In this document: positions 11,170-62,019 of the stretch, piece after piece
How the letters are laid out: every line of letters starts with the position of its first letter
Position numbering within the stretch: position 1 is the first letter of the stretch
DNA from: Bugula neritina
Lineage: Eukaryota > Animalia > Bryozoa
Length of the DNA stretch: 64,000 nt
Reading direction: 5' to 3'
Assembly: GCA_964035545.1 (NCBI GenBank)
Contig: OZ037766.1
Location: forward strand, 24,792,126 to 24,856,125
Notes under the pieces: model-generated
Told to the model about the DNA's origin: nothing
The model's input: only the letters and a program-made list of their open reading frames with translations
Databases searched by the model: none
Translations under genes and position numbers: made by a program

Positions 11170-14100
11170 ATGGAGAGTTTTTTAAACAGGCTGATGATGG
11201 TAAGTCAATATACTATCACAGAAAACTTTAAATGTCTTCATAATTCTAGGTAGCTGTAAGTAAACTGAAGTTATATATTTATAGCTTACTTGATTGAAAG
11301 AGATGTTAAAATTCTTAAGAAGCTAATTTATAAAACACAATAACTGCAATATTATATTATAAACTAACTTTTACTTCAAACATACTGGGAATTGCATGAT
11401 GTATTCTTAACTATTTACAAAGTTCACCAGCAGCTTAGCCCACAAATACTGCTGCTATATAGTTACTAATTTAATGCATCAAACTGAAACTCAGATTATG
11501 TTAGCATGACATAGTCTATAGTTATTTTAGTATTATATGTTTCTTTGTAACTCTAACTCATTTGTTTAGGCATGTGAATACTGCTGTATTTTAACACAAA
11601 ACTTGAAGAATCTAGTGATAGTTATTTATTTTATATGAATTACCTCTTCTATTCAACCATTAATTTGCAGATAAATCACTATATAAGTTTAATTCTACTG
11701 TAAAAATATAATCATCATTTGATGTCATTAATAAATAAAATTGTATTTGTGTTTCAGCTGATCTTGATGCTTGCCTGTTTAACAACTTCAGTTGCTCCAA
11801 CAAGTGCTGAAAACTCTTACATTGTTCGGTAAGTAAATTAAAATTCACACATACAAATACTATAGTCATGCCACTTCAGTTCAAAAAAATTCACTATATT
11901 CTGACATAATTTTGCTTAATTGGCCTTTAGGAAATATGTATTATTTTATACTAGTATTATGTAGGTTAGTATCCTTTTCAGCTGATTAGCAAATAACAAA
12001 TATTTTTAAATTTAAGATGATTTCATAATATTGTTTTCAATTGTGCCATTTAAGGGGAATTTATTAGGCGATAATAAAAACTTTGCTTACGTAGTTGTTC
12101 TACAAATAATGGTGTGATTGAAAATAGGATCTTGAGCTGCTCTATAAAAGCTTTACTCTGCTTTACATATTTATAAATCATCCTGAAGACTGCAAACAAA
12201 AATGTAATAATTAATTGAAGATCAATTGTGTAAGGAGTACAAAGCTACTATAATATAGTGTTGTTAGCATGTCTTATCAAAGATTCATTGTTTTATATAT
12301 TTGTATTTTTTATGTTATTAAAAATTGTAAGTGGGTTATTTTACTTTTTTTGCCACACATCATAAAATTATGAACATTACTTGCTCAGCAGAATTTATAG
12401 AAAGCTATTATATGGGGTGAGTTTATATGTGTTGATTCTAACTATACGTGTATATATATATATATATATATATATATATATATATATATATATATATATA
12501 TATATATATATATATATATATATATATATATATATATATATATATATATATATATATATATATATATATATATATATATATATATATATATACATATATT
12601 TATATATATATATATATACATATATTTATATATGTTTATAATTAAACCATCATGTTTCATGTATCCCATTTTACTAGAAAAACATAAAACATTAAGCAAA
12701 ATTAGAAACAAAACTTTGATTAGTTAGTTGTATATGTTAATGATTTTTTAGTTTAGGTCAAAAATCATGTACATACATTAGTAGCTAAGTTGCAAAAAAT
12801 AAGCAAAAGTTAGAGATAATGCATGAGTGTGTACTAAATTAAGTTATAAAATGCCTGAAGTTCAGTTAAAACTTGGTTTACCACATCGTTAAAGTTTAAA
12901 ATTTTACTTTCATAGAGAAAGAAAATGTTGATTAAACTACATATATGATCTCTGATGATAGAAACACAAAATATTGTAGTAATTTGCAGAGATTTCCTTT
13001 ATAGGCTAAATGGGTACAAGAAAGCTGAGGTGTACAGTACATCCACTTCCTATGTTTATTACATGGAAAAAGATGAGTACATAGCTGGGAACATACTCTT
13101 TATAGACAGTTATTCTCTGAGGACAACAAATGGTGTCTCAGTGTCTACCATAGCTGGATCACCAACATCTAGTGGGTATGGTACCAGTTCGGGAACAAGT
13201 GCTCGTTTTAGCAACATTTATGGATTTTACCAGAAAAACAGGACCCATGTCATAGTGGTAGATTATAGTTATTCATGTCTTCGAATGATTGACAGAACCA
13301 ATGGACATAATTCACAGTTTGCTGGAACATGTCGTTCATCTGGGTATAGAAATGGGAGAGTTGGCTACGCACAATTATATTATCCATACCAGATGTTGTT
13401 GGATAAAACTAGTCCAACCACTCTTATTGTTTCTCAAAACCTAGCATCTTCGTCATATGGTTATCTTAGATCAATTGACATTAATACTGGCTATGCTGGT
13501 GTTTTAGTGTCATCTGGTTTGAATTATCCTCGTGGTATGACATGGGATGAGAGTGAAAATGTACTTTATGTGACAAATTTGCATTATATTGCTAAAATAA
13601 CATGGAGCACCAAAAGTGTTCAAACTTTAACAGGTTCAACATCTTCTGGTAATATTGTTGGAAGTTTTAGTCAGTCACGGTTCAACAGTCTTACAGACAT
13701 TTTTTCAATGAATAAAGAAATAGTGGTAATTAATGAAAATGGTCAAAGTAAATTGAAAGCAATCAACATGGCATCTCAAATTTCTATGACTGTCGATATC
13801 TCTGGCTTTGACTCAGGTATCTATTCCGTTGCCCAGATTAATGGCAGCACTTATGTTGGTACTTCTGGAAAAATCTACAAACTGAGTGGTGAGTTTACCA
13901 ATGAAATAGCAGTAGAACCAAAATAGCAGCAGCTAATGCTTTTAACTTAATTAATAACTTATCCTGTGTAATCTACAATAGCTGTATATCTTTTATTATG
14001 TTATATAGTTTAGTGGTGGAAAAGCTTATCATTTATAGGCCTATATTATAAGATTTTAGCAATCTATACTGCTACCAGTTTAAAATATCAGTACAATTTT

Positions 14101-60500: not shown

Positions 60501-62019
60501 ACAACTTTTTATGTTTATGTTAATTTCTAAATACTGTAGCAATAACAAAACTTAGGCTCATGAGTTTGTTGTCCTATTTATTTGTGGTTATGTTTTGTAG
60601 AGAGTCCTGTAGAGAGAAGAGTTGCTCTAAAAGCAGAGTACTCTGTATCCTGTGACCAGCTAATCCTTCAGGGAATGTTTGGGAGAGCTTTATTAGAACC
60701 TGTCCTTAAACTCAAGATGACTGAACTTCAAGATATCTGTGGAAATGGTATAATAAACGTTTCTTTTTCAGCTCCTATAATACAATTTTATAGCAATAAT
60801 TTCTAAAAACAATAGTATATTTATAAGTACACCCTATATATGACATATTATTATAAATTACATATGGCATCCAAGAACTTTAGGTCATAATAATGATTTC
60901 TCAAATTTTCTTTATGTGCCTAGATGTGTTGATGTTTCCTAAAGCACACACGTTGGTGTTGTAACATATATCAAACTGACAAGAGTTTATGAATGATTAG
61001 AAAGGCAATGTATTTACTCCACATTAAAAGGATTACTAAGAAAAGTCACATTACATAGCTTTAGGTCAACAGAATGTATGTCTTTCAATATTCTGTATGC
61101 ACAGGTGTAACATGGCTGTTAACATGACTCCCAGCTACTCCTGTTCTGATAATACACTGGAAGTAAGATGGCCGACAGATCTTGTGTTCACTGGGGATGT
61201 CAAAGAAATACCAACTAAGACAAGAAGCATGCTTATTAAAGCTGCTAAGAATGTTGGGAGAAAGAAAGCAGAGATTTTAACTCTCAACAGATATCCCCAG
61301 TAAGTGGTAGTTGTATTCCCATGATCTGTGTGCAAATGGCTATAGGCAAATGAATAAGTAAATAGTTTAATCATCAAATGTGTTTGAAGTATATATTATT
61401 TACAGCTGAGGTTGTCTAAATTTATCACTGTGTTCCCAATGCTTGTATTTTGCAATTGGAGTTTTTACGAGATTTCCAGGATTAGCAGTTGCATCAAATG
61501 AAACCATGACCATAAGTTAATGCAAAATGCATCCGTCTATGAGCTACATACAGAGTGATTGGAACATATACTCAAAAAAGTCACTTGTTATCAAATTTAA
61601 CTTGTAGCTTATCACAACTCACATGCAAAATTCATGTATTAGCTATAGTCATTATCTACAGCTATATTTAAAAGGAACCTTGCCAAGAGTTTTTTAGAAA
61701 CAATAGAAAAGCTAAACATCTCTCATGATGAGGTTTTACCAGTCAATTAGACACCTAGGCTTCAAAACATGCTTGTAACTTCATGATATTTATAAGGCTT
61801 GTAGCCTATTTAAAATATTACTTTCGTTTTGAAACAAAGCTATGAATATATCGTTTAAAAAGTTGAAAATTTAAAATTAATTTTAGCTGTTATACTGTAT
61901 TTTGTAGCTTCTTATTACCCCGGCTGCAGTCAAATGGAGAAAGCATTCAGGTAGTGTTAGAGACTAAATGTACTGAAGATGGAAAAGTTTACCAGGAAAA
62001 CATAGCCACCTGTGTTTAA
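57521..62019 (+). pseudogene. Array gene copy 4, disrupted. Exons 57521-57550, 58109-58179, 58942-59829, 60243-60350, 60601-60747, 61105-61299, 61908-62019.
   Basis: A 4-bp insertion TAGC at 59786-59789 creates an in-frame TAG (exon 3 is 888 nt vs 884). Exon 6 is 195 nt instead of 196. The downstream AATAAA reads AAGAAA (~62394). Confidence 0.8.
58191..58688. repeat. (CA)n microsatellite grading into compound CACCA-type units, intron 2 of copy 4
   Basis: Direct reading. Confidence 0.99.

Follow-up and report, generated by a model that had tools for sequence, protein, structure and literature searches.

The window analyzed here, a 64 000-nt stretch of Bugula neritina DNA (contig OZ037766.1, designated C2 below), carries four copies of a gene whose predicted product joins a signal peptide, a six-bladed NHL β-propeller and a tail with eight cysteines. 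We found that these four copies form the 3′-end of an array of 11 copies, all on the + strand of the same contig and spread over ∼185 kb, and that the genome has about 100 genes of this family. It seems to us somewhat probable that we deal with a lineage-specific family of secreted recognition proteins, with a variable head and a constant tail, subject to birth-and-death evolution.

In outline, the signal peptide would be followed by the propeller, encoded by one exon, and then by a disulfide-rich module of ∼185 aa, encoded by four exons. The propeller would act as a ligand-binding head, about a dozen residues of which would be driven to change between paralogues; these residues would be situated where D-A and B-C loops meet the starts of the innermost strands, the usual ligand face of NHL propellers around the central channel. 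Targets would then differ from paralogue to paralogue, the most likely ones being surface molecules of microbes or of other non-self origin, and the invariant eight-cysteine tail would carry the shared function, for example oligomerisation or docking to a common partner at the cell surface or in the matrix. Birth and death would proceed as segments with several genes are duplicated, binding faces diverge and copies frequently become pseudogenes.

Gene structure and state of the window copies

The list of open reading frames (ORFs) of the window has four long + strand ORFs, with starts at ∼12955, ∼27037, ∼38525 and ∼58943. They mark a large exon of ∼294 codons common to all four copies (protein identity 69–77%); self-BLAST of copy 1 against the window revealed five further conserved blocks around each ORF, in the same order. 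The copies and their parts are listed below in window positions.

11170-16511, + strand: copy 1, intact seven-exon gene, 515 codons plus stop, with canonical AG/GT sites and open frame
11170-11199, 11758-11828, 13005-13888, 14209-14316, 14999-15145, 15480-15675, 16400-16511, + strand: exons 1 to 7 of copy 1
11170-11828, + strand: leader of copy 1, with exon 1 of 10 codons and exon 2 of 23 codons plus 2 nt (read from the sequence and hydropathy)
13005-13888, + strand: exon 3 of copy 1, six-bladed NHL β-propeller, 294 whole codons (AlphaFold2, Foldseek, ESM-Atlas)
14209-16511, + strand: tail of copy 1, exons 4–7, ∼185 aa with three sequons; TAA at 16509-16511
26498-29951, + strand: copy 2, 5′-truncated and damaged
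26498-26571, 26979-27859, 28215-28322, 28788-28934, 29244-29439, 29838-29951, + strand: exons 2 to 7 of copy 2
29242-29243, + strand: lesion in the exon-6 acceptor of copy 2, TG instead of AG (CAG>CTG); AG in all other copies of the alignment
37554-43478, + strand: copy 3, intact, ∼508 aa
37871-37944, 38554-39428, 39768-39875, 41278-41424, 42005-42200, 43355-43478, + strand: exons 2 to 7 of copy 3
57521-62019, + strand: copy 4, pseudogene as assembled
57521-57550, 58109-58179, 58942-59829, 60243-60350, 60601-60747 (donor GTATAA), 61105-61299, 61908-62019, + strand: exons 1 to 7 of copy 4
59783-59788, + strand: first lesion of copy 4, a 4-nt insertion in exon 3 causing a frameshift, with in-frame TAG at 59786-59788 (alignment, ORF end)
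61105-61106, + strand: second lesion of copy 4, 5′-end of exon 6 one base short (195 nt versus 196 nt), so that exon 5 does not join it in frame (alignment)

The seven exons of copy 1 make up an open frame of 1548 nt. Intron phases (0, 2, 1, 1, 1, 2) are conserved among the copies; exons 4 and 5 have 108 nt and 147 nt in all of them, exon 6 has 195–196 nt and exon 3 has 875–888 nt. Only the phase-1 model gives an uninterrupted frame, since use of the alternative donor of exon 4 puts a stop in exon 5. The initial annotation of the array had spoken of four co-oriented seven-exon copies. Their co-orientation, exon sizes and phases stood, as did the outer limits at 11170 and 62019, where copy 1 has its ATG and copy 4 its stop; intactness was seen only in copies 1 and 3, with copies 2 and 4 decaying.

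The leader of copy 1 begins with a charged n-region that contains one Arg; its hydrophobic core spans ∼11 residues, and after it come the small residues of a T-S-A site followed by E-N. The products are probably secreted. Outside the leader, hydropathy of the window copies showed no 19-residue hydrophobic window at transmembrane level. The number of N-X-S/T sequons is 5–10 per copy (five in copy 1, 10 in copy 3), and exons 4–7 together encode exactly eight cysteines, two per exon. The spliced reading and hydropathy thus bear out the leader, the repeat region of ∼295 aa, the sequons, the lack of a transmembrane segment and the Cys-rich tail that had been claimed earlier.

No exon 1 could be recognised in copy 2: its twin with intact leader, the upstream array copy L039, resembles it only from 26075 onward. 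In copy 3 the ancestral ATG is gone, so that translation can begin only with the final codon of exon 1, an ATG at 37554-37556; a second in-frame acceptor is possible for its exon 3, which would then start at 38536 rather than at 38554, and its stop (43476-43478) comes four codons later than in copy 1. Loss of the initiator ATG was observed in two array members, copy 3 (37527-37556) and L037 (L037:680-712), both of which retain an ATG codon at the very end of exon 1. Starting from this final ATG should still yield a usable leader, as its hydrophobic core comes from exon 2. With the lesions taken as assembled, the window appears to hold two intact genes and two decaying copies; an assembly error is an unlikely source of the 4-nt insertion in copy 4, which is not in a homopolymer.

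Fold of the propeller head

The exons of the window were searched and folded one by one, and P0090, a distant full-length homologue, served as proxy for the full-length architecture. From an alignment of 112 sequences AlphaFold2 predicted exon 3 of copy 1 as an all-β structure, with a predicted local distance difference test (pLDDT) score of 95.5 and a predicted template modelling (pTM) score of 0.92. The strands make six four-stranded blades, the N-terminal strand closing blade 6; the strand listing contains 22 elements, of which the two longest (N- and C-terminal) are probably two strands each. In a Foldseek search against PDB the NHL domain of human NHLRC2 came first, at a template modelling (TM) score of 0.70–0.71 and 20% identity, and then SOQ1; Teneurin-like protein and TRIM71 were lower, and Drp35 and strictosidine synthase were weaker structural neighbours. 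All 10 of the 10 listed neighbours in ESM-Atlas were NHL-repeat clusters (TM 0.76–0.83).

At the sequence level, an exhaustive search of representative sequences gave 5411 relatives at E ≤ 0.001. Pfam NHL (PF01436) matched 56 of the 112 aligned relatives at the same threshold; the window copies stayed below its cut-off of 20, with 15.6 bits as the best value (copy 2) and no match for copies 1, 3 and 4. More distant relatives had strong matches to Pfam NHL and TEN_NHL; some distant relatives also matched SGL or Arylesterase. P0090 matched no Pfam domain at all, and a thioredoxin-family match was found by Pfam neither in any window exon nor in P0090. The NHL propeller first proposed from the repeat pattern is thus supported by a confident fold prediction, by the nearest known structures being NHL domains, and by the matches of relatives to Pfam NHL.

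The repeat motif itself is real and is located in the D-A linkers. We saw three clear instances of (A/T)G..(S)SG....G....(R/Q)F..P in copy 1, in linkers 1>2, 2>3 and 4>5 (residues ∼50–70, 105–127 and 209–228), the others being degenerate. Propeller cysteines C91 and C109 are >90% conserved across the 112 relatives, as would be expected for an extracellular disulfide. They belong to a set of nearly invariant residues (D23, F68, F74, Q76, D86, C91, R97, C109 and Gly/Pro) that cluster in blades 1–2 and look structural.

Family size and spliced architecture in relatives

To count paralogues genome-wide, we searched the 216-Mb assembly that contains the window in six frames, with the copy-1 propeller as query, and obtained 133 NHL matches, 11 of them in this array, where identity to the query is 71–91%. 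Propeller exons outside the array have 30–38% identity and form large clusters on other contigs; between paralogues, most of the family's diversity is at only 30–40% identity. We counted at least ∼80 matches as family rather than all 133, since the weakest ones, at 20–29% identity and all on one contig, could represent other NHL families. P0090 matched 83 propeller exons in the genome. This count and the leader support the earlier reading of a lineage-specific secreted family.

The exon-6 peptide of copy 1 had 64 genomic matches, which sets a minimum for the tail exons in the genome. Many of the matches are on the same strand 1–3 kb downstream of listed propeller exons, and we therefore regard propeller plus tail as the norm of the family. 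Among the four best exon-6 matches outside the array, two, at C2:24003368-24003499 (+) and C2:23984249-23984386 (−), have 43–48% identity and no adjoining listed propeller exon.

P0090 is an ORF of 520 aa on an intron-less contig of 1925 nt from a public run. The contig aligns with a family member on chromosome 7 (contig C7) in exon-sized blocks at 92–97% identity (81% for the 5′ block) and the genomic introns are missing from it, so we take it for a cDNA of a near-orthologue. Its layout is leader, propeller ending at the same K-L-S-G boundary and eight-cysteine tail, the latter collinear with window exons 5, 6 and 7 in every Cys and in the C-terminal T-C-(A/V) end. In addition, a metagenome contig from an independent assembly has the same layout of exons 2–7, at 78–97% identity. 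The P0090 contig is real, though indirect, evidence for splicing of exon 3 to the tail exons in the family.

The eight-cysteine tail

Neither the tail exons taken singly nor the P0090 tail matched Pfam; the tail had no sequence match in PDB and no match in ESM-Atlas, and a word-based search for homologues returned only the query itself. With no named relative either, the genes do not correspond to a named animal gene, in agreement with the initial annotation. In the AlphaFold2 model of P0090, made with a propeller-only alignment, the propeller was obtained again and the tail had pLDDT of 30–60, too poor for fold comparison. The SEA domain is a candidate for the tail, which resembles it in the predicted alternation of strands and helices, in extracellular context and in being a four-exon module entered in phase 1. 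Pfam SEA (PF01390), however, did not match the P0090 tail even at E ≤ 10, and the eight places found by a genome-wide SEA search were neither in the array nor at the listed matches to tail exons. Judged by its sequence, the tail may be a previously unrecognised module of extracellular type.

The most conserved piece of the gene is exon 5 (14999-15145 in copy 1), with mean nucleotide identity of 93% over the 11 array copies; the introns flanking it are at ∼50% (150 nt on each side, same copies). The number of synonymous substitutions per site (dS) is 0.20 in exon 5, 0.44 in exon 3 and 0.8–0.9 in exons 4 and 7. The low value for exon 5 could be explained if its synonymous sites were constrained by splicing signals or RNA structure, or if gene conversion were limited to the exon.

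The start of intron 6 is conserved as well (15676-15800, 42201-42280 and 61300-61430): its first 80–120 nt have ∼86–88% identity in BLAST blocks, and the mean over 150 nt is 65%. Were intron 6 retained, the frame would end at a stop immediately behind exon 6 (..CCT CAG TAA), and the protein would lack its last two cysteines. The conserved start may be a regulatory or alternative-splicing element.

Selection on the propeller and possible functions

Pairwise comparison of the 11 copies by the Nei-Gojobori method gave a ratio of nonsynonymous to synonymous substitution rates (dN/dS, or ω) of 0.38 for the propeller and 0.24 for the tail; the array genes are constrained. Mean entropy is 1.37 bits in B-C loops, with 8% invariant positions, and 0.29 bits in C-D loops, with 67% invariant positions. 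The D-A and B-C loops conventionally form the top of a propeller. Using strand order only, we predefined a face class of 57 codons, made up of the B-C loops, the ends of the D-A linkers and the first two residues of strand A. Its dN of 0.38 is about equal to the exon-wide dS; elsewhere dN was 0.12.

Site classes were compared by likelihood under M1a and M2a (GY94, F3x4) in our own implementation, with an IQ-TREE tree, one fitted scale factor and fixed relative branch lengths. For the whole of exon 3 in 11 copies, twice the log-likelihood difference (2ΔlnL) between M2a and M1a was 39.8, with 4.4% of sites at ω of 4.0. The two halves of the exon, each with its own tree, gave 16.1 (first half, 8.0% of sites at ω of 2.7) and 27.4 (second half, 2.8% at 5.5); without copy 4 and L037, two copies with a damaged exon 3, the value was 31.6, with 5.8% of sites at ω of 3.9. 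The tail exons 4–7, used as controls under the same models, were not significant (2ΔlnL of 0.0, 3.8, 0.9 and 0.05). The sites listed next had naive empirical Bayes posteriors >0.8 in any run.

13051-13740, + strand: codons of copy 1 placed in the class with ω > 1, propeller residues 16, 35, 69, 88, 125, 126, 176, 179, 192, 233 and 245
13051-53, 13108-10, 13210-12, 13267-69, 13378-83, 13531-33, 13540-42, 13579-81, 13702-04, 13738-40, + strand: nucleotides of these codons

The predefined face class includes 10 of these 11 sites (hypergeometric P = 3.5e-7). The signal is modest: about a dozen sites, with ω < 1 at the level of the class.

Among the functions listed by the initial annotation (defence, recognition, adhesion or matrix), the best fit is recognition or defence, given that one face of the propeller is where diversifying selection concentrates. 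One could think of a structural, matrix or adhesive family instead (cuticle, basement membrane or larval adhesive), in which the propeller is a scaffold and the variable sites are relaxed. The proteins do look secreted, glycosylated and disulfide-rich, and at least two exon-6-like matches (C2:24003368 and C2:23984249) have no listed propeller exon near them. Still, relaxed constraint should produce ω near 1 rather than ∼4 and should not be confined to one face, and the rest of the propeller as well as the tail are under clear purifying selection; we consider this explanation unlikely.

A secreted propeller enzyme, similar to peptidyl-α-hydroxyglycine lyase (PAL), to lactonases of the SGL/paraoxonase type or to strictosidine synthase, could be suggested by Drp35 and strictosidine synthase among the weaker structural neighbours and by the Pfam SGL or Arylesterase matches of some distant relatives. 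Enzymatic activity appears decidedly improbable: around the central top opening, where propeller enzymes keep metal and catalytic residues, positions such as residues 16, 126 and 179 and those in the B-C loops vary more than any others in the family, which speaks against a fixed active site. The near-invariant residues look structural, and Pfam gave no SGL, arylesterase or PAL match in the window proteins.

A more difficult distinction is between recognition of microbes and recognition of kin. The same secreted pattern of variable face and constant tail would apply if, in this colonial animal, the variable propellers mediated fusion or rejection of colonies, gamete recognition or larval settlement near kin. 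Known allorecognition systems are a few extremely polymorphic loci; ∼100 diverged paralogues, mostly 30–40% identical, are unlike them. A repertoire for pattern recognition fits such a paralogue-rich family better than does a classical allorecognition locus, and we would assign only a small probability to allorecognition.

Several observations count against a family of variable-head, constant-tail recognition proteins. The face class has ω of 0.58 when compared with its own dS, and ω > 1 was observed neither for the whole exon nor for this class as a whole, but only in the site-class models. Positive selection rests on a small class of sites, and paralogues may exchange sequence; gene conversion can inflate the M2a result. 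The face is the top of the propeller as derived from DSSP strand order and the propeller convention, not from measured coordinates. The fold of the tail has low confidence in AlphaFold2, two of the four window copies are non-functional as assembled, and the searches found no transcript of the local subfamily.

Duplication and decay in the array

The seven upstream copies of the array (L033–L039) have exons 3–7 in the same order in each. We observed that a two-gene block of ∼45 kb was duplicated, the pair L038/L039 corresponding to the pair copy 1/copy 2, at offsets of ∼45.6 and 42.7 kb and with 90–96% identity over many kilobases. L039 retains exon 1 and the CAG acceptor of exon 6, both of which were lost in its twin, copy 2; it is otherwise disabled, by a 4-nt insertion in exon 3 and by an inserted element in exon 6:

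L039:4729-8398 (C2, ∼24.7787–24.7823 Mb): 3.7-kb element with 20-bp perfect terminal inverted repeats (CACAGAGAGAAATATTAGTG...), in exon 6

An apparent 2-bp target duplication accompanies the element, which looks like a DNA transposon. As the lesions of copy 2 and L039 differ, the twins were inactivated independently. Two extra tandem exon-6-like pieces were seen at C2:24738854-24739209, ∼5.5 kb downstream of exon 6 of L037, with 65–75% identity; no propeller exon is listed nearby, and they are probably a gene fragment inside the array.

With the frameshifted exon 3 of L037, visibly broken copies number 4 of 11 (copy 2, copy 4, L037 and L039, two of them in the window), the damage being frameshifts, stops, a lost acceptor or a transposon insertion. 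Such decay, together with the lack of direct transcript evidence for the subfamily, might suggest that the whole array is a relic of non-functional duplicates. Against this, the other seven copies have exons 3–7 all open with canonical splice sites, dN/dS is 0.24–0.38, exon 5 is 93% identical where introns are at ∼50%, and a near-orthologue of the C7 paralogue is transcribed and spliced. A relic array is therefore a highly improbable explanation, and a functional family in which individual copies decay agrees with the birth-and-death process proposed above.

Mobile elements and other features of the window

The window is AT-rich animal DNA (∼30% GC) with (CA)n microsatellites and islands of retroelements. 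The following features were noted besides the genes of the array.

45032-50045, − strand: LTR (long terminal repeat) retroelement of Ty3/Gypsy type between copies 3 and 4, with gag-like, aspartyl protease plus reverse transcriptase, RNase H and integrase parts over several ORFs; a GC-rich island (∼55%)
190-1506 and 51955-53120, + strand: related integrase/gag-like fragments
18987-22619: segment of ∼3.6 kb between copies 1 and 2, with 125-nt inverted repeats at its ends (77% complementary), nested 58-nt inverted repeats and a GC bump; probably a transposon remnant
32646-34612, − strand: two ORFs of 125 and 247 aa next to a (TA/TATG)n tract at 32020-32544

Inspected by eye, the two ORFs at 32646-34612 look like parts of a retroelement of non-LTR or Penelope type; they had no Pfam match at E ≤ 0.001. 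An Rfam scan of the window found nothing.

Relation to known systems and significance

NHL propellers are known as intracellular RNA- or protein-binding modules (TRIM-NHL) and as single-copy extracellular domains. Closest in fold are human NHLRC2 (PDB 6gc1/6g7w) and the lumenal domain of plant SOQ1 (7djl), which have the same six-bladed propeller (TM normalized by query 0.70–0.78, 15–20% identity). These are single-copy housekeeping proteins with a thioredoxin-like domain, whereas the window family has a signal peptide, no thioredoxin domain, an eight-cysteine tail, ∼100 paralogues and a fast-evolving face. TRIM-NHL proteins (TRIM71, TRIM2/3/32, Brat) likewise use an NHL propeller, with target binding on the top face, and TRIM71 was among the structural matches; in the window copies, by contrast, only two short leader exons are upstream of the propeller exon, and the C-terminus is a Cys module of extracellular type.

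Teneurin, NHLRC3 and the PAL part of PAM likewise have an NHL propeller in the secretory pathway, and distant relatives of the window proteins match TEN_NHL. Unlike teneurin, the window family is devoid of a transmembrane segment and of EGF and YD-shell domains; unlike PAM, it has no monooxygenase domain and probably no conserved catalytic center. Also, the genes for teneurin, NHLRC3 and PAM are not multigene families.

As to mode of evolution, the likeness is to snail FREPs, bivalve C1q and FREP expansions, amphioxus VCBPs and lamprey VLRs: large tandem families of secreted proteins with birth and death, a conserved part and a diversifying surface. The likeness is one of sequence evolution; the scaffold here is an NHL propeller rather than fibrinogen, C1q, Ig or LRR, and we saw no sign of somatic diversification. 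Full-text searches of the literature found no description of a secreted NHL family of this kind, with ∼100 genes and a fast-evolving binding face.

A bolder version of the proposal, which we put forward as tentative and would not yet bet on, is a germline-encoded variable-head, constant-tail recognition system that bryozoans would have evolved independently on the NHL scaffold: ∼100 secreted propellers would present different ligand faces and share one eight-cysteine effector or docking module, which shuffling would have joined to further extracellular proteins too. It would constitute a new kind of humoral receptor repertoire in invertebrates, and control of symbionts, immunity or the distinction of self from non-self by colonies would be its candidate roles.

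The array is in itself a compact example of birth and death, with a two-gene segmental duplication, twins disabled independently, and start and stop codons moved. If the propellers do bind non-self targets, they would add a new scaffold to the few diversified recognition molecules of invertebrates. The partner of the conserved tail could define the downstream pathway. For immunity, symbiont specificity, or recognition of kin and colonies, no molecular candidates are known to us from this phylum; the genes described here would then be the first.

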